A DNA stretch of 21,975 bases from Geosiphon pyriformis uo1 (lineage: Eukaryota > Fungi > Glomeromycota): the NCBI GenBank assembly GCA_016748015.1, contig JAAOMT010000556.1:1-21975 (forward strand), read 5' to 3'. The first letter of the stretch is position 1. The number at the start of each line of letters is the position of its first letter. The notes below the pieces were generated by a model. It was not told the DNA's origin, did no database searches, and worked only from the letters and a program-made list of their open reading frames with translations. Below are positions 1 through 21,975 of the stretch, one piece after another. The position numbers were made by a program, and so were the translations under genes.

Positions 1-483
1 GATTCTTCAAGTTCTTCTGGATAATTCTATTTTAAGAAACAGTAAAGATGTTAGTTATTTAAATAATTTTCTACACAAATAAAGAGTAACAACATAAAAA
101 CCTATTTAACTTACCAGCTCGTGCATTTTTTCTTCCACGTCAGAGTGAAAGATATCACTTTCTGAAGCGATATCACTTGCATTTTCATCATCACTTTCTT
201 TTTCTTCTTTCTTTTGAAGTTCATCCATAAAACTTTCAACTTCTATTGTATTAAACCACTGATGCTGATCTTTTAATAGGGTTCTTAATTTATCAATGGC
301 CCTTTGTTGTACATTTGGTCGCTGCTGGTGGTGACGTTGTCTAGCATAGATCTGATCTTAGAGGATGCTCACATTATTAATAGATAAACCATTCTTGAAT
401 TCTATGCATTGCAAAATAGATAGAATTGACCATCCATTGTATTTGGTAGCATTGAGATATTCTTCAATAATAGAATCATACAT
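1..483 (-). pseudogene. Spliced hypothetical-protein gene with one premature stop; runs off the window start
   Basis: Frame from ATG 483 reads MYDSIIEEYLNATKYNGWSILSILQC...NVSIL*DQIYARQRHHQQRPNVQQRAIDKLRTLLK...EEKMHEL with a single TAA at 358-360. It then has a GTAAG donor (114), CTAAC branch (50-54) and TAG acceptor (27), and the next exon stays in frame (NYPEELEE). A pyrimidine-rich AG at 485 suggests an upstream intron too. Confidence 0.7.
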
Positions 484-555
484 TCTAAAAAGAAATAAGT
501 CATTCATTAAGTTGCTGTGTGTATAATAATAGACAAGACCAACTTGATAGAGAGA

Positions 556-929
556 ATCAGCCTTTGGACATACATGCACCAAAGGGGATTCAGCAGATTG
601 CTTCCAACCATCTGACGCAGGAGCAAATGATCAAGACACCAGGAGGAAAACATGCCGAAATCAGCCTTTGGGCATGCACGCACGCACCAAAAGGGATCCA
701 GATTTTGCTTCCAACCATCTGACGCAGGAGCAAATGGCCAATATGCCAGTAGGATATCAGCCTTAGGGCACGCACCAAAGGGGATCCAGATGTTGCTTGA
801 CACTATCTGACGCAGAAGCAAAGGCCAATATGCCAATAGGAAAACATGCCGAAATCAGCCTTAGGGCACGCACCAAAGTGAATCCAGATGTTGCTTGACC
901 CTATCTGACGCAGGAGCAAATGGCCAATA
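556..929. repeat. Minisatellite, 4 imperfect units of ~96-104 bp, GC-rich relative to the window
   Basis: Units start with ATCAGCCTT at 556, 660, 756 and 854. Each contains GCACCAAA and ATCTGACGCAG(G/A)AGCAAA. The fourth unit is partial. Confidence 0.95.
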
Positions 930-1959
930 AACGAGTAGGGTTGTGCTTTATTGGGATAGTAGTCACCTAGAAAAAGATTCTCTAGGAGACATTTTATTAA
1001 AAAAAACTTTTTATTGATGACATATTGATAACAAAGACACGAACACATTAACTGACAAATTTGGAGATCTCAGCCCCATTTGTCGATCAATTCTTATAGA
1101 TGAAAAAATCAAATCGCCTTCGAAGATCAAAGGCCTATATTTGAAAAGCATGAAATATCTAAACAGCTGAATTTTCGGTCTTTTTGATCAAAGGCCAATA
1201 TAGCGTCTTGATTTGGTTCCGTGTTCAACCTACTTTTTCAGTCGAATGCGAGGAAACGATTAAATTAGGCTTGACAAAAACAGCTCTTATTCGTTTAACT
1301 TTGAATTTAATGACTTTTTTAATTTAAACAAAAAATAGATTAGCAAAAAAATTTAAACCCAGAAACATGACTAACCTTTTTGGGCCTTATATATCACTTG
1401 CTGCATAATGATCATATCTTTATTTAGAAAATTTTAATTGCGATTATCTAACTAAAATACATGATGGTCATTGAATTAAGCGGACTTTTACGTTTCAATT
1501 AAGAAGGGGAACCTTGAATTTCACCGAAAATAGGAACAACAGTAAATTTTAAAGATCAATTAAGTTTAACCATTCCAGTTGAAAGGAACCGTTTCAAAAA
1601 AACAGATGAGGCACATATATATAGTTTTCTCTGAACCTAAAGGCAGAAAAGTTACAAATCCATAAGAGATCCTGAATTTTAGAGCATATTATGGCTTTTT
1701 ATATATCATTGGCTTGATTGTCGCATTTTGCTTTATAAAATCAAATTTTTGAAAGCAAAAATCTATGATGGAAAGTAATCGCCTGTATCAATAGGCGCAA
1801 TTCCATTTTTGGTCAAATTTTTAATTTTTTCCTTTACAGAAGACTCCAGATGTTTTAACTTTTTATTTAAATTTGATTAGGCTATGTTTTTTGCTGCGAA
1901 AGGATGTCCATAAAAAGTTTATATCATTTTTTAATTTCATATTTATTAAAATTATATGT

Positions 1960-2530
1960 TAAAATCAAATATTTTGTTAATCCACATTAATTGTTCACAG
2001 GTTTGTTGAATAGCGTGAAACGAATGGTGACATTTTCATGATTCACTTTGGAACTATGCATTGGATTATCTTCGAACATCCTAAAGTTGTTGACAAACTT
2101 CTTCATCCAAGAGTTTACAATTATTTCCAAAGTAACTATTTTATCAATTAATAGTAAGTGCAATTTACTCTTCATGTAACAAGAGTTTTGTTTCTTTAAA
2201 TGTGAATTCAACATAATTATGAAATACAATATTTTAATTTTTAAGTTGTAAAAATACATCATTTATTATCTATAATTACATGGGAAAAAACATCATAATG
2301 AAATTAGCAGTTCAAAAACTGAATACATTATTGATTCAAGAGAAATATTCATTGTAGATAACAATAATTAAAGTAATTCTTGGAAATTAATAGGTTAACA
2401 ATATTAAAATATAAAGAATACATTTGTAAAAAATTAAAATATCATAATTTTTTATATTTTTATGTAGAAACCAAATCTAGAATCATAAATTTTTGGTATA
2501 TTATTACCATTAACCAATTTAAATAATTTT
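1960..2530 (-). pseudogene. Eroded coding fragment, probably spliced, unidentified
   Basis: A minus frame gives protein-like text with stops one transition away from Q/R/W codons (FHNYVEFTFKETKLLLHEE*IALTIN**NSYFGNNCKLLDEEVCQQL*DVRR*). Intron-like gt...ag segments lie upstream. Product not recognised. Confidence 0.35.
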
Positions 2531-2619
2531 AATTTATTTACCACTTCTATTTAAATTTTTAAAATTAAATATAAAATTTTATTAAATTTTTTGTAAAATC
2601 TAATTGCATATTGAAATGC

Positions 2620-5465
2620 TTACTAGTAAAATATAAAAAAGCTTAAAATTTCCAAAAAATTTGTTATATTAATAAATATAAATAATAATATTGCAGATTT
2701 AATTTGCAAAAATATGTAACATAATTATTTTTAAGACATAATTTAAGGTAAATCTGTTTCTACTAAACATATGTTTTGATAATTAAAATTATGTTTAGTA
2801 AATAAAACAGTCAAGCTTGAATTCTTAACTTAAAAATTTAACAGTAATACTAAATTAATAAGACATAAAACCTCTTAAATTCAGCTTTTTCCAGTAATAA
2901 AAAGTTTTTTAATCAAAAATTTGATCACACTTATCAATAAATTAATTATTAAATGCCATATTAAATCCTTTCAAAGAATTAATTATATTATAATATAGTG
3001 AAATACCCAAAATATTTAACAAAAAAATGTTATTTGTCAAGCAAAATGCATAAACAGAAAATTTGTTAAAGTAATATTGTAACCCAAAAGTATTTTGATC
3101 ATTCTAGTTAAATAATTATTAACTGAACTGATTTTTAACCTAACAAAAAATTGCAATAAATTTTTAAAGGTCTAATTTACAACTTTTAAATCCAAAAAAT
3201 AATAATTAAATAATCAGATAACAATATCTAAAGCATTTAAAAAGCCAATAATAATGCAATTTTACTCTTAACTTAAATTTGTTCAAAGAATTTTAAATTA
3301 TACAAAAAATAATAATATAAAGTCTTATTTAAAAAGTTTTTTAGAAGATTAGTCTTTAATTTTAAGTTCTTTTAAATTATTATATCTTATTTTCTATACA
3401 CATTTTTTAAAATAAAACTAAATTAAGATTACAATTGGTAATTTATTAATAAACAAAAAACATTGATAATGTGCTAGTTAATAAGAATAACTATAGTTTT
3501 GTTAATATTAATTATTAATTTTAAAAAAATTTACTTATAATATTAATATATTGAATAATAACATGATTATATCCAACTCAAATAATATTATTAACAAAAA
3601 TATTTGTGGTTAAATAAGATATAAGATCAATTTTATCTTTTATTTGACTAGTTTTGGCCATAAATTTGGTATTAATATAATAATCACAAAAATGTTTATG
3701 TTTTTTAATCTTATATAAAATAAAATCATAAAAAATCTGTTATAATAAAGAAAAAAAACTTCATTTTATTCCAAATTATTATGTATTTTATTGTTATTTA
3801 TAAACCCAAAATTAGTTATAATTCGGTTAATTCTATTATTATAAATGTTACCAAAAAACTTAACAAATCTTTTACATATTTTAATTTTTTGTAAATTATT
3901 TTTTAAGTAAAACCAACTAACTAAATCATATATTTTGAACATGTTTTACAAAACTAGTTACAATTTATAATTCTTTTCAAGATATTTTTCATAAATAAAC
4001 TTATAACAAAAATTTGTAAAAAAGTAAAAATGCCAAAAAGTTGTCATTTCAAAAAACCTTAAACTTATTACAGACAGCAAAAATATAATTAAAAAATATT
4101 TTTAACAATATTTTTGGTAGTTTTAATCAAAACAATTAAATAAATATTAAATAAAAATTTTTTTAATTAAACAAAAACAGATTTTAATATTAAACAAGAA
4201 TTTAACAAATTTAATTGTAAACTAATAATATATTTATTATAATATTTTCAAAATCTATTTAAAATATTAAACAAACTAGCAGTTTTGTTATTAGAAAAAT
4301 CTTTAATAATATTCAAAAGTTTATTTTATTTATTTTTATATATAATATTAACATAATAAAAAAAGATATACTAATATTATTAAAAATAATATATTCTTTG
4401 ATTTAATTTTTCATAATTAAATTAACAAATGATTTAATATTATTAGAATTTAAAATAAGCTTATTATTTATAATTAAGTAAATTAAAACTATTTTGTAAA
4501 AAAAATATTTTAAAATACTATAAATTATATAGCTTTTATTAATAATAAAGTTTTTTATGTATTTTTTAATTGTTATAATTATTTTATCTTATTTAATTTT
4601 GTGAAATTTACAAAACTTCTAAAGATAATAACTTTTTTTTGCTTTAAACAAAACTGATTTATTATATATTAAAATTTAAATTACAAAAGCTTTTAAAAGA
4701 TTTATAATTAATTACTTATATATAAAATAATTAAAGTTAAAATCTAAATATAAAACAAATAATTTGAAAATCTTAGAAATCAATAGCTTTAATTTATAAA
4801 AACATAATATATAAAAGTTTTTTATTAATAATAACTTATTATATTAAGAGTTAAAAAATACTTAATTAGTAATAAAACACATAATATTTTAAAATAATTT
4901 TATATAATATTTAAATTACCAACCAATTTTAATTTTTCAAAAGTATTTAAGATGATTATAGTTTAAAACAGAAAAATATTTTTAAATTTGATTTACTTTA
5001 AATTATTAATATTTCTAAACTTAAATATTCAATAATTTTTATTGGTTTGCTTATATAAAACAAAAAGCTATATATTCAAAAAACTATTCAAATTAACAAA
5101 AATTACTATAGTATTTTAATCTGTAAAAAAACTTCTATATATTAAAAATACTATAGATAAGTACAGTATTACTAAGAAAAAAAATACTAAAAAAAAATGA
5201 TTATTTTTTTAACATTATGCAAGTTTTTTTAAGTTAGAGTTTAAACAAATAAGTTATTAAAAAGAGAATTAAACAAACTTAAATCAGAATATTTTCTGAA
5301 ATTAATATTGTGCTTTGAATTATTTTTATTAAATCTATTATTTAAAATAATAGTATTATAATAAATTTATTATAATTATTTTTTGTTTACATTTATATTA
5401 TATAAGTTTATAAGTAAATAAATTAAATTTTTAAAAACATTAATTTTTAAAAAGTAATTATATAT
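2620..5465 (-). mobile_element. Hypermutated non-LTR retrotransposon (LINE) relic: AP endonuclease + reverse transcriptase + post-RT region
   Basis: Degraded motifs in the correct order: IILNNRFNK (~5320-5352, for ILGGDFNE); KQTNKNY* (~5030-5052); NKTASL (for GKAAGL, ~4273-4290); IVLIKT (for IALIET); *NMFKIYDLV (for QDMxKAYDSV, 3919-3948); LE*NEVF (for LDQGEVF); FVNN (for catalytic FVDD, 3587-3598); WKKLNLRG (~2870-2893). Small internal deletions are present. Ends are approximate. Confidence 0.88.
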
Positions 5466-5599
5466 TAATATTAAGTTTTAACAATAAAATTTAATTTAAT
5501 ATTATATTATATGCTATTATTTTTTATAAAAATTTTGTTTATCTTTTTTTAATTATAAAAATATATTATTTATTAATTAAAATATTTATTTAATATTAA

Positions 5600-6680
5600 T
5601 TTATATTATTATTATTATTAAATTTTTGTTATTACTTATTTTTTTTATAATAAACTATATTATAAAAATTTTAAAGTTATATATTAATTAAAATAAAAAT
5701 AAAAAATTAGAAAGTAAAAAAAACAATTAAACATTAAAGAACTGTTTTTTAAGTTATAAATTAACATGTATTTATATTTAAAATTAATAAATAATAATTT
5801 ATTATATAATTTAATATGATGTTACCAGTTATATATTACTAATTTTGATATTATACGAGTAATTTAAATGTCTTATTAATTTAATAAAATATTTAAAATT
5901 ATATGTTTTTTTTTAAATTTTAAATTGTTTTAACATTTTCTATATAAATTATGTAATTATGTTAATCTGGTTTTCTGATTATAAAATAATTAATTAAAAT
6001 ATGTAAAATCTTTTTATTATGAAATTTTGTTTTTTTTTGGTTTTATTATAATAAAATATAAAAATTTGCTAGTTAATTTGCATTGTTACAAGAATAAAAT
6101 TTTTAGTTAATTTCTTTTTTAATATTAAAAATCCAAAAATTAATTTAATAAGTTATTTTACTGGTAATATACAAAACAAATTTTATAATTAAATAATTAA
6201 TAATATTTTAATAAATACTTCAAAAATATTTTTAGATTGTTTTGCCGACTTAAAAGTTAAGTAAGCTTTTAATTTACTTAATCAACCAAAATACAAGTGT
6301 TAGTTACCTGAATATTAAATAAACTTACAGTTTTTTTGTGCTTTATATTTGTTTTATAACTTGATTTACAAACTTCAATAATAGAAGAACCTGCAAATTT
6401 TTTACTTGACTTCTTATTTTTCTATTACAGCACTTATTTTTTCTTTGTGGCTCAAGTTACAGATTTCTTATTATGCAACTTATTTTTTTCTTTGTATTTA
6501 AAATAAAAAAAAGTTTTCATACTTTTTTTCCTATATTTATTTAGTAACAGCTGTACTGTATCATATTTGTAATGCTTTTTTGTTTTAACAATAATCTTAA
6601 AAGATAAAAAGTCAATAATTAAATATATGAATTTCATTAGATTTTTATGTTTCTCTTGATGAGATTTCTAGGCTACACGA
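5600..6680 (-). pseudogene. Heavily eroded, probably intron-containing gene remnant, unidentified
   Basis: The minus strand is A-rich, with GTATGA/GTAAGT donor-like sites, pyrimidine-rich AG sites and an open stretch LEPQRKNKCCNRKIRSQVKNLQVLLLLKFVNQVIKTNIKHKKN ending at a GTAAGT (~6330). It shows the same G/C depletion as the adjacent LINE. Confidence 0.3.
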
Positions 6681-7143
6681 AATTAGAACGATTTTCTCAA
6701 GATAAATAATGGTATCTATTAGTTATTGAATCCCCAATAGATTATCTGTAATATATTATTATTAAAGTTATTATTAATTTCGAAAAATGCATACATCCAA
6801 AACATTGTTGGTATTTACAAGTTTAAAAAAATAAAAATTTCAATTGTTTAGTGAGACAATTTTTTTTTGTCAAACAATAGCTTTTTTCTTGCCCATTTTA
6901 TAACTCACAATTAAAAGTGAAAATAATTACATTTCAATTGAAAAGTCATCATTATTTAAGAAAATATTTCACATTTATAATAGTTTCCTATTTTTTATGA
7001 TCATTTTTAAAAAACTACATAATTTATTCAAACTTTAGTTTAATTAAAATAATGACACTATTATTGTGGAATTAAATGGTTTTAAACTTTAGAAAACCCT
7101 ATGTCTATAGAATTAACCAAATAAAACCAATTTAATTGATGCT

Positions 7144-8109
7144 CTAAATCGGGCTCGTGCTAATTTTTTGGGGTACTTGCGATCTTACCTTTGCGATCTT
7201 AATTCTAGCGGCTAGAGCACACAATGTAATGAACACAATCAGATCCCATGCCCATAATTGATTAAATTCTGATTCCGGCCAACTATTTTGTGTTCCTCTT
7301 AATGCATTGATCCAAAGAAACGTTAAAATTACGTATCCAAAAGTTCGATGATATTTGTACAATTCTCTCGATTGAACAGCTTTGGCACCAGTTGAATGGG
7401 AGAAATAAACCATCAATGATGCTCCTAGCATGTGAGCAAGCAGAAGGGATATTATTATGAGGCCAAATATCGAGTGAGGTGTGGAGACTTTAGGTTTGCA
7501 AGAGGGAAATTATTTTTAAGATTCAATTGTCAATATTTTTAATAAGATCATTAAACAAAATATAATCTTTATCACTTACAATGTTTTTCTTTGTGCTTTA
7601 TTTTGGTATAAACTATAATAGAGAATCCAGCTGTGCATGTTAATAAACCAAGAAACTGGACAGCGCGATGAAATCTAAGCCCCTGAATTTTTTCTTCTTG
7701 CTTTGCAGTTCGTTGGAGTAACAAAATTCCTAAATTAAATTTCCCATACTGGTTTCAATTTTTTTGACGAAATAAAAATTCCATTCTGAGAGCAATCAAA
7801 AAATTCAAGAATCTTTTAAAAATCACCTTGAGTAAGCAAGAGCAAGGTGAGAGACATCAATAATGGATGCCACATAAAAAGGTCGAAATTTTTTGTCTTT
7901 AGTACCACATAGCATACCAAGGCTAAAAAAGCTAAACTGCCAGCCGTGGCAATCCAATAAAACACGAAAGCAACATTAAAAAATGCTGCCCCTGTTGGAG
8001 TGGAAAGTGGTAGATGCTCTCTATGGGACATCATTTTCGTATAGCCTTCATAGTTAAATGGTTTTTTTTCCTCCTCTTGACCTTCTGGATTTACTTTTAC
8101 GGTTACCAT
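7144..8109 (-). CDS. Cytochrome b561 family transmembrane protein (CYB561D-like), 3 exons, 258 aa
   Basis: Exons 8109-7827, 7729-7580 and 7487-7144 join in frame (777 nt). There are hydrophobic helices and four spaced heme-ligand histidines: WHPLLM, FHRAVQ, PHSIFG, YHRTFG. Confidence 0.92.
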
Positions 8110-10359
8110 TATTTTTTCTTGAATATAAACAAATGATTATAAAATTTTTTATTGCTTGAAAAATTTTAATGAATTTAAATTCTTTATCATAATTTACAAA
8201 ATGGAAATTCGTCACAAAAAAAAAAGGATGAAATCATTCGTTCCCTTTATCTTTGACAATAACATGAAATACCAGCAGCAAAGGATTAATTCCTGTGGGT
8301 AAATGTATCTTTAAATACATTAATTTATAAATTTTTTATATTCCTAATTGAATTATTATTCTGAGTAGTTTTGAAAAATATCAAAGCCTGGACACATTTG
8401 TGAAATCTAACCGAGTGAGATTCCCGATCATCGATAAATAGATAGCCAAATATTGGAATATATTGTTATGGTAATAGATTACTCTTTCAAAAATTATTTT
8501 AAATCTGGATAGGTAAAAATGACTAGTTTTTCGACATAGCCATGTGCTTAAATGTTTGTTAAATGTTTGTCTCACGCTAACTGAAATGGATTACGCCAAT
8601 GGTTGTAAAGCTATTTGAGGAAAATAAGATGAATAAGAACTGGGCGTGTTGAGGTATTATTATCATTATTATTATTATAAATTCAAAATTTTTAGGAATC
8701 TCTGTCCAAATGCAAACGGGGCAGTGGGATTTAGATTTTAAGATTTTATAGAAAGAAAACTAAATTTAGTTAGCTTTCTTTGGAAAATGGTACACTGTTT
8801 TTCGATGATTTTGTTTTTGGATCATTAAAAAAAATTTTATTATCCAAAAAATCGTTAGACTCCTTTAAAATAACCTACGTTTGGGATTTTTTCCCAGGAA
8901 TCATCGCTCAGTACATAAGTGCGATATGAAAAAATAACCAATTACAATAAATTTCAATCTTCAATATTCAAAAATAAATTTTTGCTTCATTCCTTTTTAC
9001 GTTGGATAAAGGAAGTTTTGATAGTTGTATTGGGGTGAGGATACGGTTAATAAAGCATATGATACTACATAATTAGTTAAGTTCGATATATGATTAAAGA
9101 GAATTTTTCTATAGAATTAAATGTAGAAATATCTAGAAAACTATTTGAAATACGGGTTATATTATCAGATTTGAATAATCTTATACCTGAAAAATCTTAA
9201 TTAAACTTGAAATAAACAGATTCTAATTTTAAATATTCTTTGACAAAATAAGATTCTCTACGAGATAATCTTCTTTCGGCATCAATATTTGTTTCCTAAC
9301 TTTTCAAATCCCTCATGGCAACGCCAAATGATTACAAAAATGGATGACTATTGTTGTTAATTTGAAGACGAATTTGCTTTTCAAAAATCTTTAAGTTTTA
9401 AAAACAAAGGCATTTTTCGACATGTTTAAAAGCTTTGACAGTAGTTGGTCATTATCAAAAATTCTTTGTTGAATAATAATGGCATTTATCATTTATCAAT
9501 CTCTCATAAAACAAATAATTCAATATCTAATCTCTTTGGCGGGTCTAATTCGTATCTCGACTGAGTCAACCCATTGGGGAATTAGGGATTTTCACATTCT
9601 ACCGTTCTCGAGCCTTAATTGATTGAAAACTTCATGATGCGATAGTTTCGGAGGAAAACGGTTGTTCCTTGACGCTTTTGATTACAAGTCGTATTTTGAT
9701 ATTGCACTCTACAGCTTCCTTAAGGACCCCCATCTTAGCTGGGTGGTTTAAATATCGAGTTCTAAATGGTAGTCTTCAACCTGCAGATTTTGCTTTTAAC
9801 ATATAACCCTAATTTTTAGAGGATTATTTTCTTCGAGTAGCAGTCTTGATTGAGCATCATGATAATAATTCGATTTATCAATGAAATACTTCCAACGCTT
9901 CATAATGTGTAAAGAAATCTTTTTGAAAAAAATATTTAGATTTTTAAAGCTAAAAATCCTGTTCCATGTATTCTACATCGAAAGCAAGAGCAATTAAAGT
10001 ATTTTAAAATTATAATCTTATTTTTTTCAGTCACTCTGTAATCATATTTAATAAATCTAAAGCTTGTGATTGCAAAAGTGAAAGTTGTGATTCGGTGCAG
10101 AGGCACACTTAATTAGTTAGGCTCATATTGAGGAGTAATTGAAATTTTTTTAAGTATTATTCCGTTTTAAGCTTCCCAACCTATCAAAAATTTCCAGTAT
10201 CACACATGTCATTATTTCAAAGCATCATCTCAGTTAGAATTTATACACAATAAATCATATTATAAATTTCACGGTGGGAGTCTAAAAATTTCAACACTAT
10301 TTCTCACATCTAAAAAATTTCTAACTCGGGCATGGAATGAATATTCATTAAGCCCTTCA

Positions 10360-11430
10360 AATATTTTAATTTTTTTATAACTTTTTCAGTGAGAAATTTT
10401 TATTAAGACTTTTTACAATTTTATTTATAGTATTAAATTATTGCTTCAAAATATCCATTTTTAACAAAAACTATATTTTACTATATTTAATCAGTAGCAT
10501 AAAGTTGATTTGAATCAATTATTCAAAATACTTTGGAAAAAATAATTAGCAAAAGTTATATATTTTATTTTTAGCTAAAAAAAAAGTTCATAATTATATT
10601 GTCAATAGATTTCAAAATGTCAATTATTATAAAAAATTAAGTAAAACCATCTTTAAAACTTGCAATTAACTTATTTAAGAAATTAATTTTTCTTATCATT
10701 GTAAAATCTAGGCTTAATATTCATTAAAACTAATTTTGATAAGAAATACTATTATTTTAAGTAAATGTGAAAAATTAAATTATTGTAAGTTTTAGATGAA
10801 TAAAACGTCATTGTTTGAATATTAAATAAAACATATTAAAATATGTTTTTAGTTTTTTTTGCATCAATTTAATTATTAAGACAATATTAAATTATTTTTT
10901 CATATAAAAGTTGTAAAATTTACTATTTTTTTGTTTTGTTATTATTTTTAATGTTGTAATTCTTTAAAAATATTTAATTAATCCAATAAATCACAGCATA
11001 AAAAATGATCTTGAAACAATTGATTTTTAAAATTTCTATTATGACATTTTTTCATTGTTGAAGCATTGAAATCTTGGTCTTATTATAATAATTAAATTAG
11101 GATTTTCTAAAAAAAATATATAAATTATTAACAAAGTTATGAATAAATATTGTGTAACTCTAAATAATTAATTTTTAATACCTTAATATGGTAAAAGTAT
11201 TGAATTTTATTTAAAATTCATAAGTATTAGTATTTTTATGTTTAAATTATTTCTCGAATAAATAAATTCTTAAATTTAATTCATTTTTCTGAGTTTGTAT
11301 TGTGATGTATAATGATTTAAATCTTTATATACACATTATTTTTAATAATTTTAATTTTTATACTATATTTAAGTTGTATTTTATTACTAATACAAAATTT
11401 TCGCTGAGATTATTTTTATTTATTTTTAAA
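10360..11430. other. AT-rich eroded block of unknown origin
   Basis: Very low GC and almost no CpG. Stop-riddled protein-like text occurs on the minus strand, but no motif was recognised. Confidence 0.45.
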
Positions 11431-11509
11431 ATAATAGACATTTACCGTTGATCATTCTCAACATCTGAATTAGAATTGTTAAGCGGAAAATAATTTGCAT
11501 TAAGATACA

Positions 11510-11532
11510 ATTATTATTATTATTATTATTGC

Positions 11533-11563
<31 letters not shown>
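11510..11563 (+). repeat. Compound microsatellite (ATT)7 GCT (GTT)10
   Basis: Read directly from the sequence; it accounts for the poly-N ORF 11426-11611. Confidence 0.97.
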
Positions 11564-11565
<2 letters not shown>

Positions 11566-11584
11566 GACTAATGAGGATGATTAG

Positions 11585-11944
11585 ATTTCTAGTTTTCAAA
11601 TTGTTGGTCATAATTGTGAAAGAAAAAATTTGTTAGCATACGTATACCCAATTGATTCAAAAAGATTTGATTCGGTCGACAGCTACTTCCGTTCCAGCAA
11701 GATGATAAGTTGTCACTATAGTGCTTACAAATATAGAACATACTTCATGTTTACACCTAACGGCCAACTTTCTCGAAATGAAGAACAAAATTATGGAGAC
11801 AAGACTAAAACAATTATTATTTATCCTGATAATTCTAATTGTCTTTTGATATATGAAAATCAAAGCAATGCTACCGGGATAGAAACGCAAAGTTATGGGA
11901 AAATATTTTCGTGGAATGAAATACTAATTCAAAGGTTTTTTTAA
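11585..11944 (+). pseudogene. Isolated exon/fragment of an uncharacterised fungal protein
   Basis: A CTAAT branch and TAG acceptor (11582-11584) are followed by an open frame ISSFQIVGHNCERKNLLAYVYP...IIIYPDNSNCLLIYENQSNATGIETQSYGKIFSWNEILIQRFF*. By recall only, it resembles the N-terminal part of an expanded Glomeromycotina family (IYP...LvtY...Gxi.dWnG). No intact upstream donor or downstream continuation was seen. Confidence 0.4.
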
Positions 11945-12249
11945 ATAACTCATAAAGATAAAAACTTGCTTAATTTTAAAACTAAAGGTTTTATTGATAA
12001 TCTAAAACACTTTATACAGTTGTATAAAATTAAATACAGAACTTTGATCGAAATTTTTATTTCGAAATATATACTGTCAAAAAAAAATATGATAAAGTGG
12101 ACTATTTATAATATTCCGTAAGTTAGTACATAAAATATTGAAATAATTTTCATGTGTTCTTAGATCAAATATCTTACAGAGCCATTTTGAAATAGGGTAT
12201 TTATAATCAAAACTATTTCTCGACCTTATAGCTACTTGATTGCCACCAG

Positions 12250-12938
12250 AATACAAATGAATAAAAATAATTTTATTTAATTACACATAATTAATAATTC
12301 ATTTTATTTTCAGTAATAATAAATTTGTTTAATCTCTTGTAATAAATGTTTAATGAAAACCCCATTTATTTATATAAGATAAAGATAATTTTATAACAAA
12401 TATAAAATTGAAATAAACTTATTATGAAAAAAAAATATTATTGACAAATAAATATGGGATATTTATAAAATAAAGAAACCAGTATAAAAAAAATAAAGAT
12501 AAAATTGTCAAAATTTAATAAAATACATTATAAATAATAATTTAAAAATATAAAACATTAAAATAATATACAAAAAAATATATAATAAAAAATTACTACA
12601 AAATCAAATTTTATTAACAATTTAAATTCAAAATTTTAATTAATATTGATATATTTAATTTTTATATTCATTATTTTATTGATCACTATTATTAAATTCA
12701 ATTATGAACTTAATCATTAATGAGTTGATTTTTAGCTTAAAGTTTGACCTAGTTATTAACTTTTTTGTTAAATATATATATAATTTTTTCTTTAAAATAT
12801 AAACATTTTCTATTAAAAACTTGTTTTTTAAAAAGTAATAAATTTTTATCTATTAATCATAAAAAAAATATTTACTTAATAAAAATATTTTTTATTGAAT
12901 TTTAAAAATATTGACTAAAACATATTTTTTAAATTCAG
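12250..12938. other. AT-rich eroded block flanking the LINE 3' end, unidentified
   Basis: Very low GC, no CpG seen, no recognised motif. Confidence 0.4.
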
Positions 12939-15190
12939 TTTTTTTTTGATTACTATTATTATTATTTTTTATTCTGTATTAATAAACATAAACCAACCCC
13001 AACTTAATACAATTTAGCAAAAAAACTAAATAATAAACAAAGCTTCTACTTAATTTAAAGCTTAGAGTTAAATAACTAAATTACCACAAAATTATGAATT
13101 AAATTAACAATTATCATAAAAACAACATTAATTTAATTCAATTTATTAACTATTTTAAATATCTAATTATTAGACATAATATTTTTATTAATTATTAGAT
13201 ATGTTTCAAATATTAAAAAAAGTTTTCAAAATTGTAAAAAAAAAAATCTTAGCATCAGACTTAAAAAATAATATATTAACAAATTTTTTAGTAATTAATA
13301 TCTTGGCAATCTTATTCTTTAAACAAAAAACAAATATTTTAATAAATCCAAATTTTTATATTTTAAACAAACTACACTTGAATAATTACAATTGTACAAC
13401 TTTTTTTTAATAATAATTGGCAACTGTTTATCTAAAGCTTTTATTATACATATATAAAAATCACCAAATTTACAAATTATTAAACCAAATTTAATATTAT
13501 CTTTAAAATACCAAACTAAACAAATTTATTTTAATTAATTTTTAATTAATCTACTTAATAAAGCTCTTAGCTTCTTAATAAATACAATCTATTAAATAAA
13601 ATAGTATTTTTAAATATAACATAAAATTTTTTAATGCTAATTAGTAACAAAAAAGTAAACTTTATAGTTAACTTAGACAAAATATTTACAATTTTATTTT
13701 TTAAATTATTAAAATATTTTTTGATCTTAATTTAATTAATAAAAAGCTTTTGTTTACAAATTAAGTTAATAATTTAATGTTTTTTAACCCAATATTTATG
13801 TTTAAAATCGAGATTAATATTAATTTAAATGTATTTAAAACAGTTTAAATATTAAATTTTATTATAATATGTGTAGTTTTAAGTATTAAAATAATAATTT
13901 AAAGCTTAATTAATATAAATAACATAATATTATACATATTAATTTTCATATTTAAAATTAAATTCACAGAAAAACAATAGTTATTTTAGCTAATTTAAAA
14001 AAACCAAAATTTTTTACAAAACTATTTATATGTTTTGTAAATTTAAAACAACTTAATTTATATAAACAACAATTTTTTTAAACCAATTTAATTTGAATTT
14101 AAATAAATATAATTTTTTTTTGTCTAATAATTAATTTATAAACTTGATTTTAAACTTTTTAAGAAATTTAACTATTTTTTCTTTTTTATTATAACAAAAA
14201 TTAATATATTATTATAAAAAAATTTAATAAAATCTTAGTTATAACACAGAAAAAATATTATTTTTAACATTATAAAAAAGTATAAATTAAGATAATTAAA
14301 CATAAAAATAAATATTTTTTTTAATATATTATTAAATACATTTAATTTTAATAATTTATATATTAAAAGTTTCAAATTATAAAATACAAAAAACACTTTA
14401 TTTATATTGTAATTAAACTTTGTTATTTAATTTCAATAAAATACTCTTTAGATTATAATATTTAAAGTTTTAACTAAAAAAATTTTTTCAAATCTAATTT
14501 ATTAATTTGTATTAATTTTGTTTAAAGCAAACTTTTAGGAATCCTTATTGACTTGTTTGTAAACTAATCAAATTTTAGTATTTAATAAACTATTTAAATT
14601 AATAAGTATTAAAACAATAATATAATATATATTAAAAAACTTGTAAATATTAAACACTTCTTTTTTATAACAGTTTTATACAAAATTTTATTAACCAAAA
14701 TAAAATTTAAATATTTAAAAGCATTTTTAAAGTTGTTCTATAAAAAATAATTAATATTTTTATTTAACAAAACATTATAAAGATCCAAATTTTTGTATGC
14801 ATTAAAATTTGGCATTGTGCTTAATATTATGTTTGTTAAAATTATCACTCAAAATAACAAAATAACTCTTATTTAATGCCTTAACAATTCTATTGTTAAT
14901 ATTAACAGTCTAAGTAAAATACTTTATAAATAAGGTCTTAACATAAAGTTCAATAATAAATACTAAGAATAAATCTCTATATAATAGCTTAACAACCAAA
15001 AAACACTCAAAAATGTTAATTTTGCATACTGTTTAATAATAATAATAATAATAATAATAATCAAAATTACACTTAAGCCCAAATAGCCAATGTCTTTTTT
15101 CAAAGCAAAAGCCATTAAGTTTTTTCTGAACTTAATCTTTACAATAATTTAAATTAAATTAGTAGTTTTTTTATGCTATCTAAAACTAAA
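12939..15190 (-). mobile_element. Hypermutated LINE relic: 5'-truncated endonuclease, RT deleted, RNase H and C-terminal zinc finger
   Basis: Motifs in order: R*HKK...DIGYLGLSVI (~15070-15181); KALNKSYFVILSDNFNK (VILSDNFN at 14835-14858, for VILGGDFN); KQVNKDS*KF (14529-14558); RNase H N*IKIKKYFNNLKNKIVNIL (13672-13737, for WxKxKGHSGxxGNExAD); LVWY (13508-13519); KALDKQLP...KKLYNCNYSSVVCLKY...KYLFF (13325-13441, CCHC-type finger). A possible AATAAA (12968-12973) and A9 tail (12939-12947) mark the 3' end. Confidence 0.88.
15035..15061 (+). repeat. (AAT)9 microsatellite inside the LINE endonuclease relic
   Basis: Read directly from the sequence. Confidence 0.95.
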
Positions 15191-15519
15191 GCTGGAATTT
15201 TGTCGTTTTGGTTTTCTGGTTTTTATATATAATCATGTTTTTATAAATAAAATCACTAAATTTTTCCCTAATGTATTTTTTATGAGGGTTAGGTTTGATT
15301 ACTTGATATAATAAATCATCGGATGAAGGATGAATAACGTCCGCGAATGATATGAGTGTTGAAGTATGATATATTTAAATTATACAATTGTCTTAAAATT
15401 TAGATAACGCGTTAGTAAATATGTGATAAATAAGAAAATAAGTCTATTCTCTAAGGGTTAGTTCCATTAAAAATATGACAAGATTGTGCTATTGTTGTTG
15501 TGAAACAAGCCTGTTGATT

Positions 15520-16890
15520 CTATATAACTTTTAAAAGATCGATGGAAATATAAGCCGTCAATAAGCTCGTGATGAACGAAGATATAAAGTTAACCTAAAT
15601 ATCACAAATATCAATTTCAATACTAGCCCACTAAAAAAATAAGTGTGTATCAAGATCATGCTTACTTGATTATTATCCAATAAATCCCATCCACTAACAA
15701 CCCTCACATCTTTATTTAAATGCGATGTTATCTTCTTCGATGTTAACGAGTACAGTGTTTTTTGGACGGTGGCACCCAAGATCGAATCCACAATAGAACC
15801 AATTAACCCAGCAAAACCAGCAATCGGGATCAATTCCCACCACCAGCGATTGCAACCACTCGCCAAACCTATAGACGCCACCGCCGAGATTCCAATTAAA
15901 AGGCCACCAGACAATGATGCTCCAAGACCTAATGCAGTGATACCGCCGTTTGTCCCGGGCGGCACCTTTTCAATGGAGTGGGAATATATTACGATCCAAA
16001 GAAGTATTAATAATATCAAGAACTTTTAAATAATGTGATGTACCTTTTTCAAGTTGGTGATTAGGTATGGCCAGTTCTTATTGAGTACTCCGATCTCGCT
16101 TGCCCACTAAATAATTTTATTCAAATCCAGAATTAAATGATAACAAAAAAAAAGAATAATAATTTAAACTTTGCCAAGATAATGAAAAAGAATGAAGAAA
16201 GATATCCTACCGTATCACCGTTGCAAGTCGCATAATGTCTTATAAATGCAGGTGGTCAAAAGGTTTTATCTAGCCTCATCAAGGTAATTTAAGATTTATA
16301 GTCTAAAAATCTACTCACCCGAGGTAAACTAAAAACAGTTTTGCCGCGGAAGGATTATCGAAGAGACATTGAATTTCTCCACCAAATTGATATTGATGCC
16401 AGATGGCAACTGAAGTACCCCAAAGTGCGTTGCTGAAGACTTGTACAGCATTTCTTTGACCCCCTATTTTCGTGGGTATAAAGTCGGCAATTTAAAATTA
16501 GGATTTTAAGCATAAAGTTGAAAGAGAAATGATGAGCTTAATAGTCACAAAGAGGATTTAACTTACCATCTTGATATTCCTCCTCAATTTCTTTCTTTCG
16601 TTGCGCTTTTAACTAGTTGTAACCCATTCAAGATTAGGGGATTCACTTTAATTTAGATTGTCTTTCATAATCTATTCTTGCTTTGTCTTATAACAGAGCT
16701 TCACCTTTGTCAATCGAGATCCCGTAAAATAGAATACAAGCATCAATATTGGAAATACTGCCCATTCATTATAAGTCGTTCCCATTCCGACAAAGAAGGC
16801 GGCTACCGCCCCCGAATGCGACAGTGACTTTTTCCGTAACCCATGGGCAACTAGGAAGACCGATAATGCCAAACCAAAAAGCAGTCCCAT
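15520..16890 (-). CDS. TMEM19: TMEM19 / DUF92 integral membrane protein, 7 exons, 280 aa
   Basis: Exons 16890-16705, 16612-16567, 16463-16319, 16238-16211, 16106-16044, 15965-15666 and 15594-15520 join in frame (843 nt). Family motifs: KKSLSHSG, GGQRNAVQVFSN, GDTWASEIG, VPPGTNGG, DSILGATVQ, LDNNQVN. Confidence 0.95.
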
Positions 16891-19800
16891 TTCAAATATT
16901 TATTGATGGAAAAGCAGTGATTGTGCTAAGAAATTAGTTGGCTCAAAAAAGGTTATCATTAATCAAAATTAATCTTGAAAATAAAATCATCATATTTAGA
17001 ACATTATTTATTATAGTTCAATACATCAAAAATTTAGGCCAAATATTTTAAAATTTATCCGTAATGTTAACCTTATTGGAAGTAAGATATTAACAAACCA
17101 AAATTATTTCGTAAAATTGGAAATGGTTACGGCATAAATTGAGAGATGGAGAGGACAAAAAACGACCGAGAAGTTCAAGATGCCCGTTTTTCAAAGGCGA
17201 CAATTCTCAAAGCCGAATTTTGGTAATATATTGAAACCATGATCGTGACAGTCACTTTAAAAAAGAAGATTTTTAATGAATTTGCATTCGTAAATGATTT
17301 TGGTCAATAGCAATTAAATTTTCTCTCATAGATCTTGGTGATAAATGCATTGTCAACATAGACTTTCTGGGTAGCAGATAGATATTCTAATCACTGAAAA
17401 AATGAAACGGTGAATTTTTAGCAAAGAATATAAATACCATATATAAATCCATTCTCTGCGAATAAGATTTATCTGGAATATAGGGAGAGACGCCAAAATT
17501 TAATTTAGTATTACTCTACCATGGACGAAAAAATAATAGACCTCTGAAAAAAACATACCTAGGCTATCCACTGTTAAAAATGCAACGTTAATCGAAAGCA
17601 AGGGATAGAAATAAAGAATAAAACTTGATATTAATTATCATACAAACGACCTAAATATCAATAATTTCAGCACAACAAAAAAACACTATGATTTATATTT
17701 GGGCGCTTTTCAGACACTAGGTTATTCACAGACTGCCAACCTCGCTCGATAACACCAGGCAAAGTGTCGCTAAAGGTGGCTTTCGAACGCAAATTACTAG
17801 AAGGACATCATGAAAACTACTTCACTTCGTGTAGATTATAAAGACCATTTACTTACCAATCAGCGTGAAAATTTTTTAACGAAGCTTGGTTAACAATCAG
17901 TGATGGTCAAATCTAATGATTCTATTTATAGCTAATTGGAAGTCATGTGAAGATATATTACGTACTATTTTTCGGATGACTAAAAATGGTTATGATTACA
18001 TACATACATAACTTTCTTGCTACGTTAAAAACTTTTAACAAACATGTAAAAGAAGAATTGCTAAAACAAAAAATTAGTTCTGAAAAAGCACCATGTGAAC
18101 AAGAAGGAGCTATTATTTTAAATCAAAAATTATACACGACCAAAGACTGATAACTGTTTAGGTCAATTCAATTCAACCACTTTTGAGATTAATTTGAATT
18201 ATTGATTATATGAAATTTTTTTAACAAAAAATTTGAAATTAGAACTCAACCTGAATTGTAATATTTATATTAATATTATGTGCTACTAGCTTATTTTGCT
18301 TCATTGAAATTTTTTCATATTTTTCAATAGAAAATTATATAAGTTAGCGAAAATATTTGAACGAAATCAATTTCCTTTATTTGATAAGAAATAATCTTGA
18401 GAAGTTAATAAAAGAATTGAATTTTATAAATGGTTAACAAGATAAAATCTGAACCTTAATTTTTTATGAATATGACATATAGAGCTATTTAAGAAAAATT
18501 TCAATTATTGTTCATCTTAGGCTTTGTATTTGCTTTTGCTTTTTGTGAGGCTTGTAAAATATATTTTTTAAATTTGAAAAACATAATTCTAATTCCATTG
18601 TTTTAAGTTTAGAGCATATATGCATTCGTTTAATTAATTCCTATTTCCAGTAACTTCATTTGGAATTTCTCGCCCTTCAAAGGCTTAAATTAAAATAATT
18701 AAAATACATCCATTTCATTTGAAATTATGTAAACAAAATTGTATAATATTTATCGGCTAAAGATAAGAAAGGCCTCAAGATTTGCACATTAATCTAGTTT
18801 GAGCTATTGTCCAAAAAATTTCTCCATTCAATCACCCATTATGATCTAAATATTCACAATCACTTTGAATATTACCCTTGCTTGAGGAAAAAGCGAATAT
18901 TCTTTTCAGTATTAATGTTGCTATCTTGGAAAAATTATTCAAATTTAATTTGAAAATTTATCATTGATTAATATTTTCGACATTTTATTTTATTGAGCTC
19001 AGCCATTATTTTAATTGTATAGTTTGGTTTCTTTTATGGGTTAAGTATAGATACAGTAACTTCAGTAATTTAAAATTTGGATGTTAGGCTTCCTTGACAT
19101 AACTAATTGTGCCAATGACTATCATTCTTCTGGAAAAAGGTTAGATCAGCTTCCGTTTAAATGCACACATGGACTCTTGTTTCACTTTTCTGGAATAAGT
19201 TTCTGTCCCAATTTAGCCAATAAATTGAATTCATAATTAATCTGAAACTCGGAAAAATATTCACAATCTAGTGGGTGAAAAAGTTGAATTTACAACGGAG
19301 GAAATAATATCTAAGACTAAATTAATTTTGGAGAGTTTAGTACAATGAAATCATAGATACAGCAGCATTATAACAATTTGGACTCTAAAACAAACAAACC
19401 AAAACAATTTTGAAAAAGAATAATCCGAACAAAGAGACCGATTGGGGATCCGAAATAGTTTGTTTCAAAAAGAGTGACAAAAAACTATCTCGGACCAGAA
19501 TTAGGCTATTTCAATTCCCGTTTAAATGTCAGGCCTTTTCTTGCTATGAAAAATAAAATATAACTAGTGTTTAAATTAGTATCTATGTGCATTTAAATAC
19601 TTTCCCAAATTGTGGAATAAACGAAATAAATTACCATTACATTATTATTATTGAACTATTTTTTAGTGAGCCCGGTCATTTTAGCGACTGTTTACACTCT
19701 TAACATACGTAATTTAATGAGCAAACCTGAAACGCGAAAACTTTTCTTAATATTCCGAAATCAAAGCACCACATCACGAACAATTTAACACGCCTCTAAC

Positions 19801-20366
19801 TAATATTCTTGTTATTCGTAAATATATCCATAATAAACATTCCTAAGTAGGCTTTTGGCATGCTTTCCAAATAGAGACACAAATACGAACGTCCTTGAAA
19901 AAGTCTGCATTTCAGCTCTTTTACTCAGAGAAAGCTATCTTGTGAGGCAGGTTTTCCTTTCCAATCTCGGCAGCTATCCACTACTAATAACAAATTTGGA
20001 GAGTGTTTATTTGAAAAAAGGTCTTTAGACCCTTTCCTACAGCATTTTTTTTTCTTCCACTTTAGCACCCCATTTTCAAAATTCCCACATTCCTTACTTT
20101 AAATCAAGTAAATCACTTGAGATTTCTCTTTGTCTGCGACAGAGGATTGGTTGATGATTGTCTTGATCATAATATTTTCTAAATAAATCACTGCTCGTCT
20201 CGTTCTTTTTTGTCGAATTACATCTTCTATATTCCCCATTACCTCCGGGATATTGTTGCTTTCACTTTTTCCAACATCTATAGGAGGAAACTTTCCCCAT
20301 CAAAAATCAAAAAGTTTACATTTTCTTTAAACCCCACACTTAAACATTTGGGTATACAAGAACGAA

Positions 20367-21975
20367 ATGCCACGAAAAACATCTTTACATAAAAAAAAGG
20401 GTAGAGATTCATGGGAAAGGTTATCAGAAGTAAATGAAAAGGAGAGTTCATCATTTCAAAAGACGTCCTCACCACAGCGACCAATCGACTTACCGCCGAC
20501 TGTCTTTATTAATCAATCATCCGAGAAACCAAGCAATGAGGTTGATTTAATACCAGCTCCCATTTGGTACCGTCCAAACTACGATCAAAAAGACATTTTT
20601 GACAATCGTCACCAATTCGAAGTAGAACAGGGACCTGATGTTCTTTCGTTCTATCCTGCCTACCCTACATTGGAAAATTCTCCAATAGAATCTGTACGAG
20701 CGACAGTTTCCAAAAACGATGATCGCACATTGCCTTGTTTAACTTTTCGCTTTTGGGTGCTCAGTTTTTTTTTCACGGTTTTCGGGGCCGCATTTTCGCA
20801 ATATTATTATTTCACGACTATACCATATCAGTTTTCAGTCTTTTTTGTTCAATTAGCGACTTATCCATTGGGTCGTTTGATGGCCAAGGTGTTACCGCGA
20901 AAGACAATTAGAGTTGGAGAATGGTTTTGCTTTTCCTTAAATCCTGGGTGAGTTAAAATAGAACAAAAAAGAACGTGGTGTTGTGCTTTGGCTAGGGAAA
21001 AAGAAAATCTTAAGGGATTTCAATGGCAGATTTACAGTAGAAGTAATTTTAGCTACTGTCGATTTACGGGTCTAACTAAACTCTAATAATTACATTGTTT
21101 CTTGTTATCTAGACCTTTCAACATGAAAGAGCATGCATTAATTGGAGTGGCCGCCTCAGGTATGTTCAATTGGAACTTTATTCTACAAAATCACAATTTC
21201 TTACCCATATTGTCCACTTTCCGATTCAGCGAGCGCCTACCCATATGCAATATATGCTTTGACAGCTCAAAAATTGTTTTTTGCTCAGCAATTTAGTCAT
21301 GTTGGGAGTTTATTTTTATTAATATCGTCACAATGCCTTGGTTACGGCCTGGTAAGTTTTTACACTATTCTGAAGGGTAAAATTAATAAACTTCCCAGCC
21401 TGAGAAACTAAATTAATTTTTTGGTAGGCAGGAATGGTTTACCCAATCCTTGTTGAAATGCCCGATATGATTTGGCCTTTAACTCTCGTCAATGTAGCTT
21501 TCTATAACACTCTTCATGAAACTAAATACAATTTTATTCGATCCCTTTCCCGCATGCAATTCTTTTGGATTGTATTTATTTGTATTTTCATATGGGAACT
21601 ATTGCCACAATTCTTTGCACCAATTCTGATGAGCTTCACAGTTCTCTGTTATTTTGGGCATAAAAATCCTCATTTGGTTAATTTGGGAAGTGCTAACCGT
21701 GGTGTGGGAATTTTGGGGATTACTTTTGATTGGATGCAAATAACCACTTTTATGCCATTGTCTTCACCTTGGGTATGATCAGTTTTGTTCATTGGAAATA
21801 CGAACTTCTTGAATGAATTATAATTTCAGTTTTCCCTTCTTTTTTTATAGTGGGCACAAGCCAATGTATTGTTTGGCGCTGCAACATTCTTATGGATAAT
21901 TATGCCAATCGTGTATTATACAAATTTTTGGAATGCACGGGATCACCCAATAGTTTCAACTGATGTGTTTGACAC
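20367..21975 (+). CDS. OPT-family oligopeptide transporter, 3' end beyond the window
   Basis: Exons 20367-20947, 21113-21159, 21230-21351, 21428-21772 and 21851->21975 join in frame. Motifs: ENSPIESVR, DD..LPCLTFRFW, LNPGPFNMKEH, SQCLGYGLAG, MIWP, PWWAQAN. Confidence 0.96.

Follow-up and report, generated by a model that had tools for sequence, protein, structure and literature searches.

What removes C from transposon copies in a fungus outside the Dikarya, and is the process RIP-like? The question is raised by a contig of Geosiphon pyriformis (Glomeromycotina), whose 129-Mb assembly has 29% GC and 64% repeats (PMC9453076). The window analyzed here is that entire contig, JAAOMT010000556.1 of GCA_016748015.1, with a length of 21,975 bp. 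An earlier note, made from its letters alone, had proposed a repeat-confined, both-strand, mostly non-CpG C>T mutation favoring a 5′ T or pyrimidine, and in this general form the proposal is supported by the present analysis. The features on which the argument relies are listed in Table 1.

Table 1. Features of the window and milder LINE copies used as references (L007 and L008, loci of two Geosiphon proteins).
Feature	Position	Strand	Remarks
Copy A, decayed non-LTR retrotransposon (endonuclease, RT, downstream region)	2400-6600	-	14% GC; 5′-pyrimidine C>T signature
RT catalytic aspartate pair, now AAT AAT	3587-3592	-	related copies: GAT GAT in two, GAT AAC in the third
Most eroded stretch of copy A	5341-5820		6% GC; ApC:TpC 22:4
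Unique DNA without signature	6700-10300		internal control; YC/RC index about 1
Third AT-rich block, weak signature	10400-11400		15% GC
AT-rich tract on the 3′ side of copy B	12250-12800		12% GC; no CpG; no 5′ bias (28:28)
Copy B, decayed, same LINE clade, internal deletion (RT missing)	12800-15200	-	14% GC; same signature
DUF92 gene	15520-16890	-	unique flanking control; closest relative from Ambispora leptoticha
OPT oligopeptide transporter gene model	20367-21778	+	match to KAG9292256.1, G9A89_000274; introns 31% GC
Milder LINE copy, same clade	L007 6385-11910		
Milder LINE copy, same clade	L008 14124-20790		
Milder LINE copy, same clade	L008 9250-13393		

Blocks A and B are copies of a non-LTR retrotransposon (LINE) with an RVT_1 reverse transcriptase. 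A related Geosiphon copy carries RVT_1, and copy A aligns across that domain. The order of the element is endonuclease-RT-RNase H, in which the first part is what we take to be an endonuclease from its motifs and RNase H was assigned via a metagenomic relative. A motif scan led to intact metagenomic relatives, and a profile of one of these together with a piece of the window led to the two Geosiphon proteins at whose loci the three milder copies lie. These copies have about 34-41% GC and are almost without CpG. Cluster look-ups returned no close sister copies of the LINE; A and B are thus compared with other subfamilies rather than their own, and since the reference copies share only 65-71% mutual identity, the comparison is confined to sites conserved among them.

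Permissive alignments are noisy in such AT-rich DNA, and stricter alignments with nulls were used instead. Copy A aligns with the three milder copies over 2828-5352 (score 1015 against a null of about 40); alignment of 5353-6600 and 2400-2827 does not rise above the null, and the ends at 2400 and 6600 are defined by the signature and not by homology. An arrangement of copy A as two LINE fragments was rejected, as the alignment runs on one diagonal. In copy B, 14462-15014 aligns to the endonuclease-side part (score 155 against about 45) and the region following RT is matched by 13328-14030 (138 against about 45). Element ends and target-site duplications were looked for in A and B and not found, and no match came from a search for homologues of a stop-free piece of B or from Pfam on the decayed pieces. 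For the block at 10400-11400, no homology to the LINE or to the other repeats compared was found. Several NCBI models named 'hypothetical protein', at L007 6841-10666 and L008 10001-20669, represent decayed LINE frames in which predicted introns bridge the stops, and the annotated proteome is inflated accordingly.

Several further features of the window were noted. The start of contig JAAOMT010000424.1 shares 100% identity with positions 18725-21975 (and with positions 1-3251 of locus L009), which is an assembly overlap; the OPT gene is complete on that contig (836 aa), the 366-aa model in the window being a truncated duplicate. Positions 553-950 hold a unit of ∼98 bp repeated four times in tandem (45% GC, CpG o/e 0.3-0.5) without AT erosion, crossed by open frames that have no Pfam match. 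Unannotated exon-like frames of a membrane protein, presumably cytochrome b561-like, lie on the minus strand at 7144-8109, and Pfam on the single exons gave no match. On the plus strand, a 104-aa open frame at 11630-11944, again without a Pfam match, is flanked by two AT blocks and adjoined by (TAT)n/(TGT)n microsatellites. A scan of viral-contig patterns returned nothing.

The dinucleotide counts on which the earlier note had relied, (ApC+GpT):(TpC+GpA), were reproduced exactly: 22:4 in 5341-5820, 24:14 in 4081-4560, 48:18 in 13741-14460 and 15:36 in 18181-18540. The 28 G/C and the CA:CT ratio of 13:15 in 5341-5820 were likewise exact on recount. Over whole blocks, ApC:TpC is 280:169 (2400-6600) and 170:83 (12800-15200), versus 598:818 in unique non-coding DNA, and the bias is present on both strands. 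As transitions keep the purine/pyrimidine pattern, decayed DNA can also be described by a YC/RC index, that is the share of pyrimidine sites being C after a pyrimidine relative to the same share after a purine. Unique DNA has an index of about 1. In the two blocks most values lie at 0.13-0.65, the range in copy A being 0.13-0.86, mostly below 0.65. By this measure the signature is weak in 10400-11000 and absent from 6700-10300 and 11400-12800. In copy B taken alone the bias is seen by composition, its conserved sites being too few to show it. The span 2200-15200, given as a single stretch in the earlier note, is not one domain. It holds two elements with the signature, a block in which it is doubtful and ∼6 kb that it has not touched: 6700-10300 and 11400-12200 are without the signature, 10400-11400 carries it weakly and 12250-12800 is AT-rich without it.

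Could the signature be an artefact of the GT-rich composition of the LINE or of window picking, on top of generic AT drift? The stretches first picked were extreme, and unique DNA is AT-rich too. However, the milder copies have an ApC:TpC ratio of 0.87, and simulation of context-free C>T starting from them gives 0.88 ± 0.11 with a maximum of 1.22 in 300 runs, versus 1.84 observed, which rules out LINE composition, an alternative raised in the earlier note. Moreover, five AT blocks on two other contigs, when pooled, show the same 5′ pattern even more strongly, while the most AT-rich unique stretches mostly lean in the opposite direction. An artefact is therefore scarcely credible.

About 65-70% of conserved C have become T, on both strands, versus 1-3% T>C. 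At unanimous sites of A and B the values are 62% for C and 65% for G, reverse changes being rare (T>C 3.5%, A>G 1.9%) and transversions amounting to 5-10% per base. At codon positions 1 and 2 of copy A, counting sites unanimous in the three relatives, C has changed to T at 83 of 146 C/G sites, to A at 7 and to G at none (C>G 0/146), and T to C at 4, to A at 19 and to G at 3 of 344 A/T sites. Transversions are not negligible in the old copy, reaching about 5% at codon position 2. The changes of conserved residues described there are also found, namely GAT GAT > AAT AAT at 3592-3587 on the minus strand and, in alignment, TGG > stop. At conserved A:T pairs in 2830-4400, A-T transversions (5.5%) outnumber transitions (1.2%); this excess may stem from slippage or poor alignment where DNA is AT-rich, or may point to a second bias.

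Loss of C depends on the 5′ base. In a relaxed set of conserved sites it amounts to 81/99 after T, 73/94 after C, 66/98 after A and 38/61 after G (pyrimidine vs purine, P = 0.004), and rates for TpC and ApC are unequal (P = 0.02). By contrast, the 3′ base has little influence (A 0.67, C 0.69, T 0.78; CA o/e about 1). Logistic regression of C survival gives the same picture, with a main effect at −1, smaller effects at −2 and −3 and little at +1, and a simulation fitted to the dinucleotide counts yields 1.64 hits per site for TpC, 0.91 for CpC, 0.75 for ApC and 0.66 for GpC. The preference for certain 5′ bases is genuine, amounting to about twofold, and every 5′ context is still mutated. Keying on the 5′ base, as put forward earlier, consequently stands as a preference but not as a strong rule, and ApC is by no means spared, two thirds of it being gone. 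The steady ApC density reported in support of sparing is indeed the steadier of the two, but is accounted for in the model by a lower rate together with resupply from GpC when the G mutates.

The milder copies show the same preference among branch-specific non-CpG C>T changes (T 0.37, A 0.24, C 0.23, G 0.15; pyrimidine vs purine, P = 0.0006), and CpG-capable sites are changed at 0.56 versus 0.19-0.29 for others. CpG that survives in mild repeats (loci L007, L008 and L010) is more often preceded by T (TpCpG 0.033 vs 0.015-0.021 for other NCG), an apparent survival about twice that of other NCG and opposite to the non-CpG bias, which hints that CpG and non-CpG routes may differ. Locus L010 also contains an inverted repeat pair of ∼1 kb (2081-3055 and 3233-4167), 75% identical with 71 transitions to 22 transversions, in which CpG is the context changed most.

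Occurrence of the same spectrum in non-repetitive DNA had been named as an observation against a repeat-directed process. No such spectrum is found: the unique non-coding DNA of the window has 29% GC and a CpG o/e of 0.91, and lacks the 5′ bias. Erosion is deepest within each element (6-9% GC) and fades toward the unique flanks, which fits a chromatin domain. The rates in copy A imply, as an estimate, an equilibrium GC of only a few per cent; unique DNA of greater age must therefore be exempt from this process. In a sample of four gene-centered loci from Ambispora, Paraglomus, Funneliformis and Scutellospora, too small to define the taxonomic range, there are no such deserts. The locus of Scutellospora calospora (L011) does contain 6 kb (1000-7000) of CpG-poor DNA (o/e 0-0.34) with a pyrimidine-C index of 0.71-0.99, possibly a weaker version in another order. 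In locus L009, a Lipase_3 gene has its 3′ part duplicated in inverted and near-identical form (13022-13445 and 14013-14436, beside an N gap); this pair is almost without C>T, and is either an assembly artefact or a very recent duplication.

Whether the deserts arose in a burst or steadily was judged from transversions at codon position 2, a rough measure of time since insertion. These amount to 0.009, 0.009 and 0.018 in the mild copies versus 0.051 in copy A, and non-CpG C>T hits per site to 0.18, 0.17 and 0.28 versus 1.13, giving C>T:transversion ratios of 17 (10-33) and 22 (14-36), respectively, at position 2, and of 12 (8-18) and 18 (13-25) at positions 1 and 2; both terms include divergence from before insertion, the references being other subfamilies, the transversions number only 3-18, and for copy A their count may be too high through misalignment in AT-rich DNA. 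Alignment gaps number about 14 in copy A and 0-1 in the mild copies, and in-frame stops 22 and 4-8, respectively. Neither strand polarity nor regional clumping is seen in the three mild copies (P = 0.15-0.52; power is limited with 80-130 events per copy, and repeated passes would blur both).

A one-off burst was rejected, as C>T scales with the transversion clock across young and old copies; given this scaling and no sign of polarity or clumping, neither a RIP-like pass nor a deaminase burst finds support. Since the mild copies share the same bias and a similar C>T:transversion ratio (about 12-22), the simplest reading is a single steady process, with the AT deserts as those copies on which it has acted longest; many weak episodes might also produce this picture. 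Borders between younger LINE copies and AT deserts are sharp (L007 6385 and 12890; L008 13393, 14124 and 20790), which fits later insertions with erosion still to come, and one of the deserts (L007 12900-14000) corresponds to the 5′ part of a further, older copy from this LINE clade.

Starting from the observed rates, context, repeat confinement and rough scaling with age, we infer a role for methylation, heterochromatin, an enzyme and a life stage. The explanation that we favor, at somewhat better than even confidence, is a chronic, methylation-linked C>T process at non-CG sites in heterochromatin, most likely involving a DIM-2-type enzyme, on top of CpG decay. Transposon copies would be marked as heterochromatin and methylated. 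CpG sites would be lost first and fast; as a second layer, C in all other contexts would change steadily to T on either strand, at a rate roughly double after T compared with a purine. A DIM-2-type non-CG methyltransferase would most likely either methylate C, followed by deamination, or mutate C directly during vegetative growth, and a LINE of 39% GC would drift over time to a few per cent GC. For the AM-fungal clade, retention of DNMT1, DNMT2, DNMT5, DIM-2 and RID has been reported (PMC8298701), so that an enzyme from a methyltransferase class already known is the simpler candidate. In Zymoseptoria, Dim2 causes mitotic C>T in methylated repeats (PMC8016269). CG as well as non-CG DNA is methylated by DIM-2, which distorts the flank at −1; an arginine intercalates there in the structure, and the authors leave it open whether a flank preference results (PMC11315935). 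Against a DIM-2 reading, known Dim2/RID signatures are keyed on the 3′ base (CpA, CpT), the effect of which is almost nil here.

Comparison with described systems brings out likeness as well as difference. The Dim2 mutator of Zymoseptoria tritici also produces non-CpG C>T in transposons that accumulates with time and needs no sexual cycle, as would be the case in Geosiphon, but more than 98% of its C>T is at CpA and CpG is little mutated (PMC8016269), whereas in Geosiphon CpG is lost fastest, the 3′ base otherwise hardly matters and a 5′ T does. RIP in Neurospora crassa and Pezizomycotina shares repeat-confined C:G>T:A on both strands, AT-rich relics and the sparing of genes nearby; it is premeiotic and homology-sensing, proceeds via a RID/DIM-2 pathway, and prefers CpA with a minor role for the 5′ base (10.1101/344036), a CpA preference not seen in Geosiphon. 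The TpCpG hypermutation of Pucciniomycotina (PMC3318451) likewise targets repeats and depends on a 5′ T, but requires a 3′ G, while the 5′-T effect in Geosiphon acts on non-CpG sites; this type was rejected, TpCpG being if anything the best-surviving CpG in the mild repeats. Passive decay of methylated CpG explains the first layer, the near-total CpG loss in the milder copies, and transposons of Rhizophagus irregularis have high CG methylation (10.1101/2021.03.30.436303). Such decay nevertheless leaves about one hit per non-CpG C in old copies unexplained. A catalogue of ten fungi lists CpA, CpT and CpG signatures, none of which matches the present pattern, which is RIP-like in outcome with a signature of its own.

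Among the alternatives to chronic methylation-linked C>T, true RIP is unlikely; it would require a homology-sensing, premeiotic RID-type mutator with a non-Neurospora preference and a weak effect in each of many (cryptic) sexual cycles. Repeat-confined transitions on both strands and AT deserts are what it predicts, a RID type is reported for the AM-fungal clade (PMC8298701), RIP-style indices are shifted in the RIP direction (TpA/ApT 1.08-1.12 vs 0.80), and many weak passes through a sexual cycle would equally look clock-like. Yet the CpA preference is missing, lightly mutated copies lack strand polarity, and the four-copy tandem repeat has kept its GC, though it may be under a length threshold. 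In addition, a kingdom-wide screen reports RIP-like signatures in Ascomycota only, with Geosiphon not named in the accessible parts of its text and supplements. A more far-reaching reading, that Glomeromycotina (Geosiphon at the least) possess a mutator dedicated to repeats, distinct from RIP and passive decay and sensitive to the 5′ base, which would be either a hitherto unrecognized DNA deaminase or a homology-guided mutator of the DIM-2/RID family, we consider fairly improbable.

Two further explanations would account for the 5′ bias through damage or editing. Geosiphon lives on the lit soil surface, and ordinary damage left unrepaired in heterochromatin, that is deamination of C with poor uracil excision, with or without UV dipyrimidine lesions, would be steady and without polarity, as observed; a pyrimidine at −1, and more weakly at −2 and −3, lowers C survival accordingly. 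On the other hand, purine-C-purine sites, at which no dimers are possible, lost more than half of their C, a 3′ pyrimidine adds little (survival 0.46 vs 0.47 in the RT part of A), and C>A is 5% versus 57% for C>T in copy A. Tandem CC>TT changes, which UV would produce and which the earlier note had suggested counting, are not in significant excess, with odds of 1.25 in mild copies (P = 0.6) and 2.9 in copy A (P = 0.11). UV alone is thus set aside, and unrepaired damage in general appears quite improbable. Still more doubtful is an APOBEC-like, TpC-preferring DNA deaminase editing transposon DNA on replication intermediates or in chromosomes. A 5′-T preference with a weaker pyrimidine effect at −2 is characteristic of APOBEC3A/B and resembles the pattern found here, and the more frequent TpCpG among surviving CpG would agree with separate CpG and non-CpG routes. 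The preference is merely twofold, however, the strands are mutated equally without the strand coordination of APOBEC3A/B mutagenesis, clusters and C>G were not seen, and the load grows with age after insertion, which argues against editing at retrotransposition. Nor was a candidate gene seen.

A narrow literature search, the genome paper excluded, found no report of such C>T erosion for Geosiphon pyriformis. RIP-like signatures have been described as confined to Ascomycota (PMC12543289) and were undetected in Gigaspora and Mucoromycotina (10.1101/2021.03.30.436303). Transposons of Geosiphon, but not the adjoining DNA, lose C ∼15-20 times faster than transversions arise, most of all after T. 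Transposon ages and repeat content in this fungus will therefore be misjudged unless C>T is excluded. The 5′-base signature is measurable and can be compared with the flank preference, if any, of DIM-2 or RID enzymes. If the process is meiotic, it would have a bearing on cryptic sex in Glomeromycotina. More generally, with a repeat-confined mutator strong enough to bring transposons of a glomeromycotan down from 39% GC to about 10%, mutagenic genome defence would reach into an early-diverging lineage as well.
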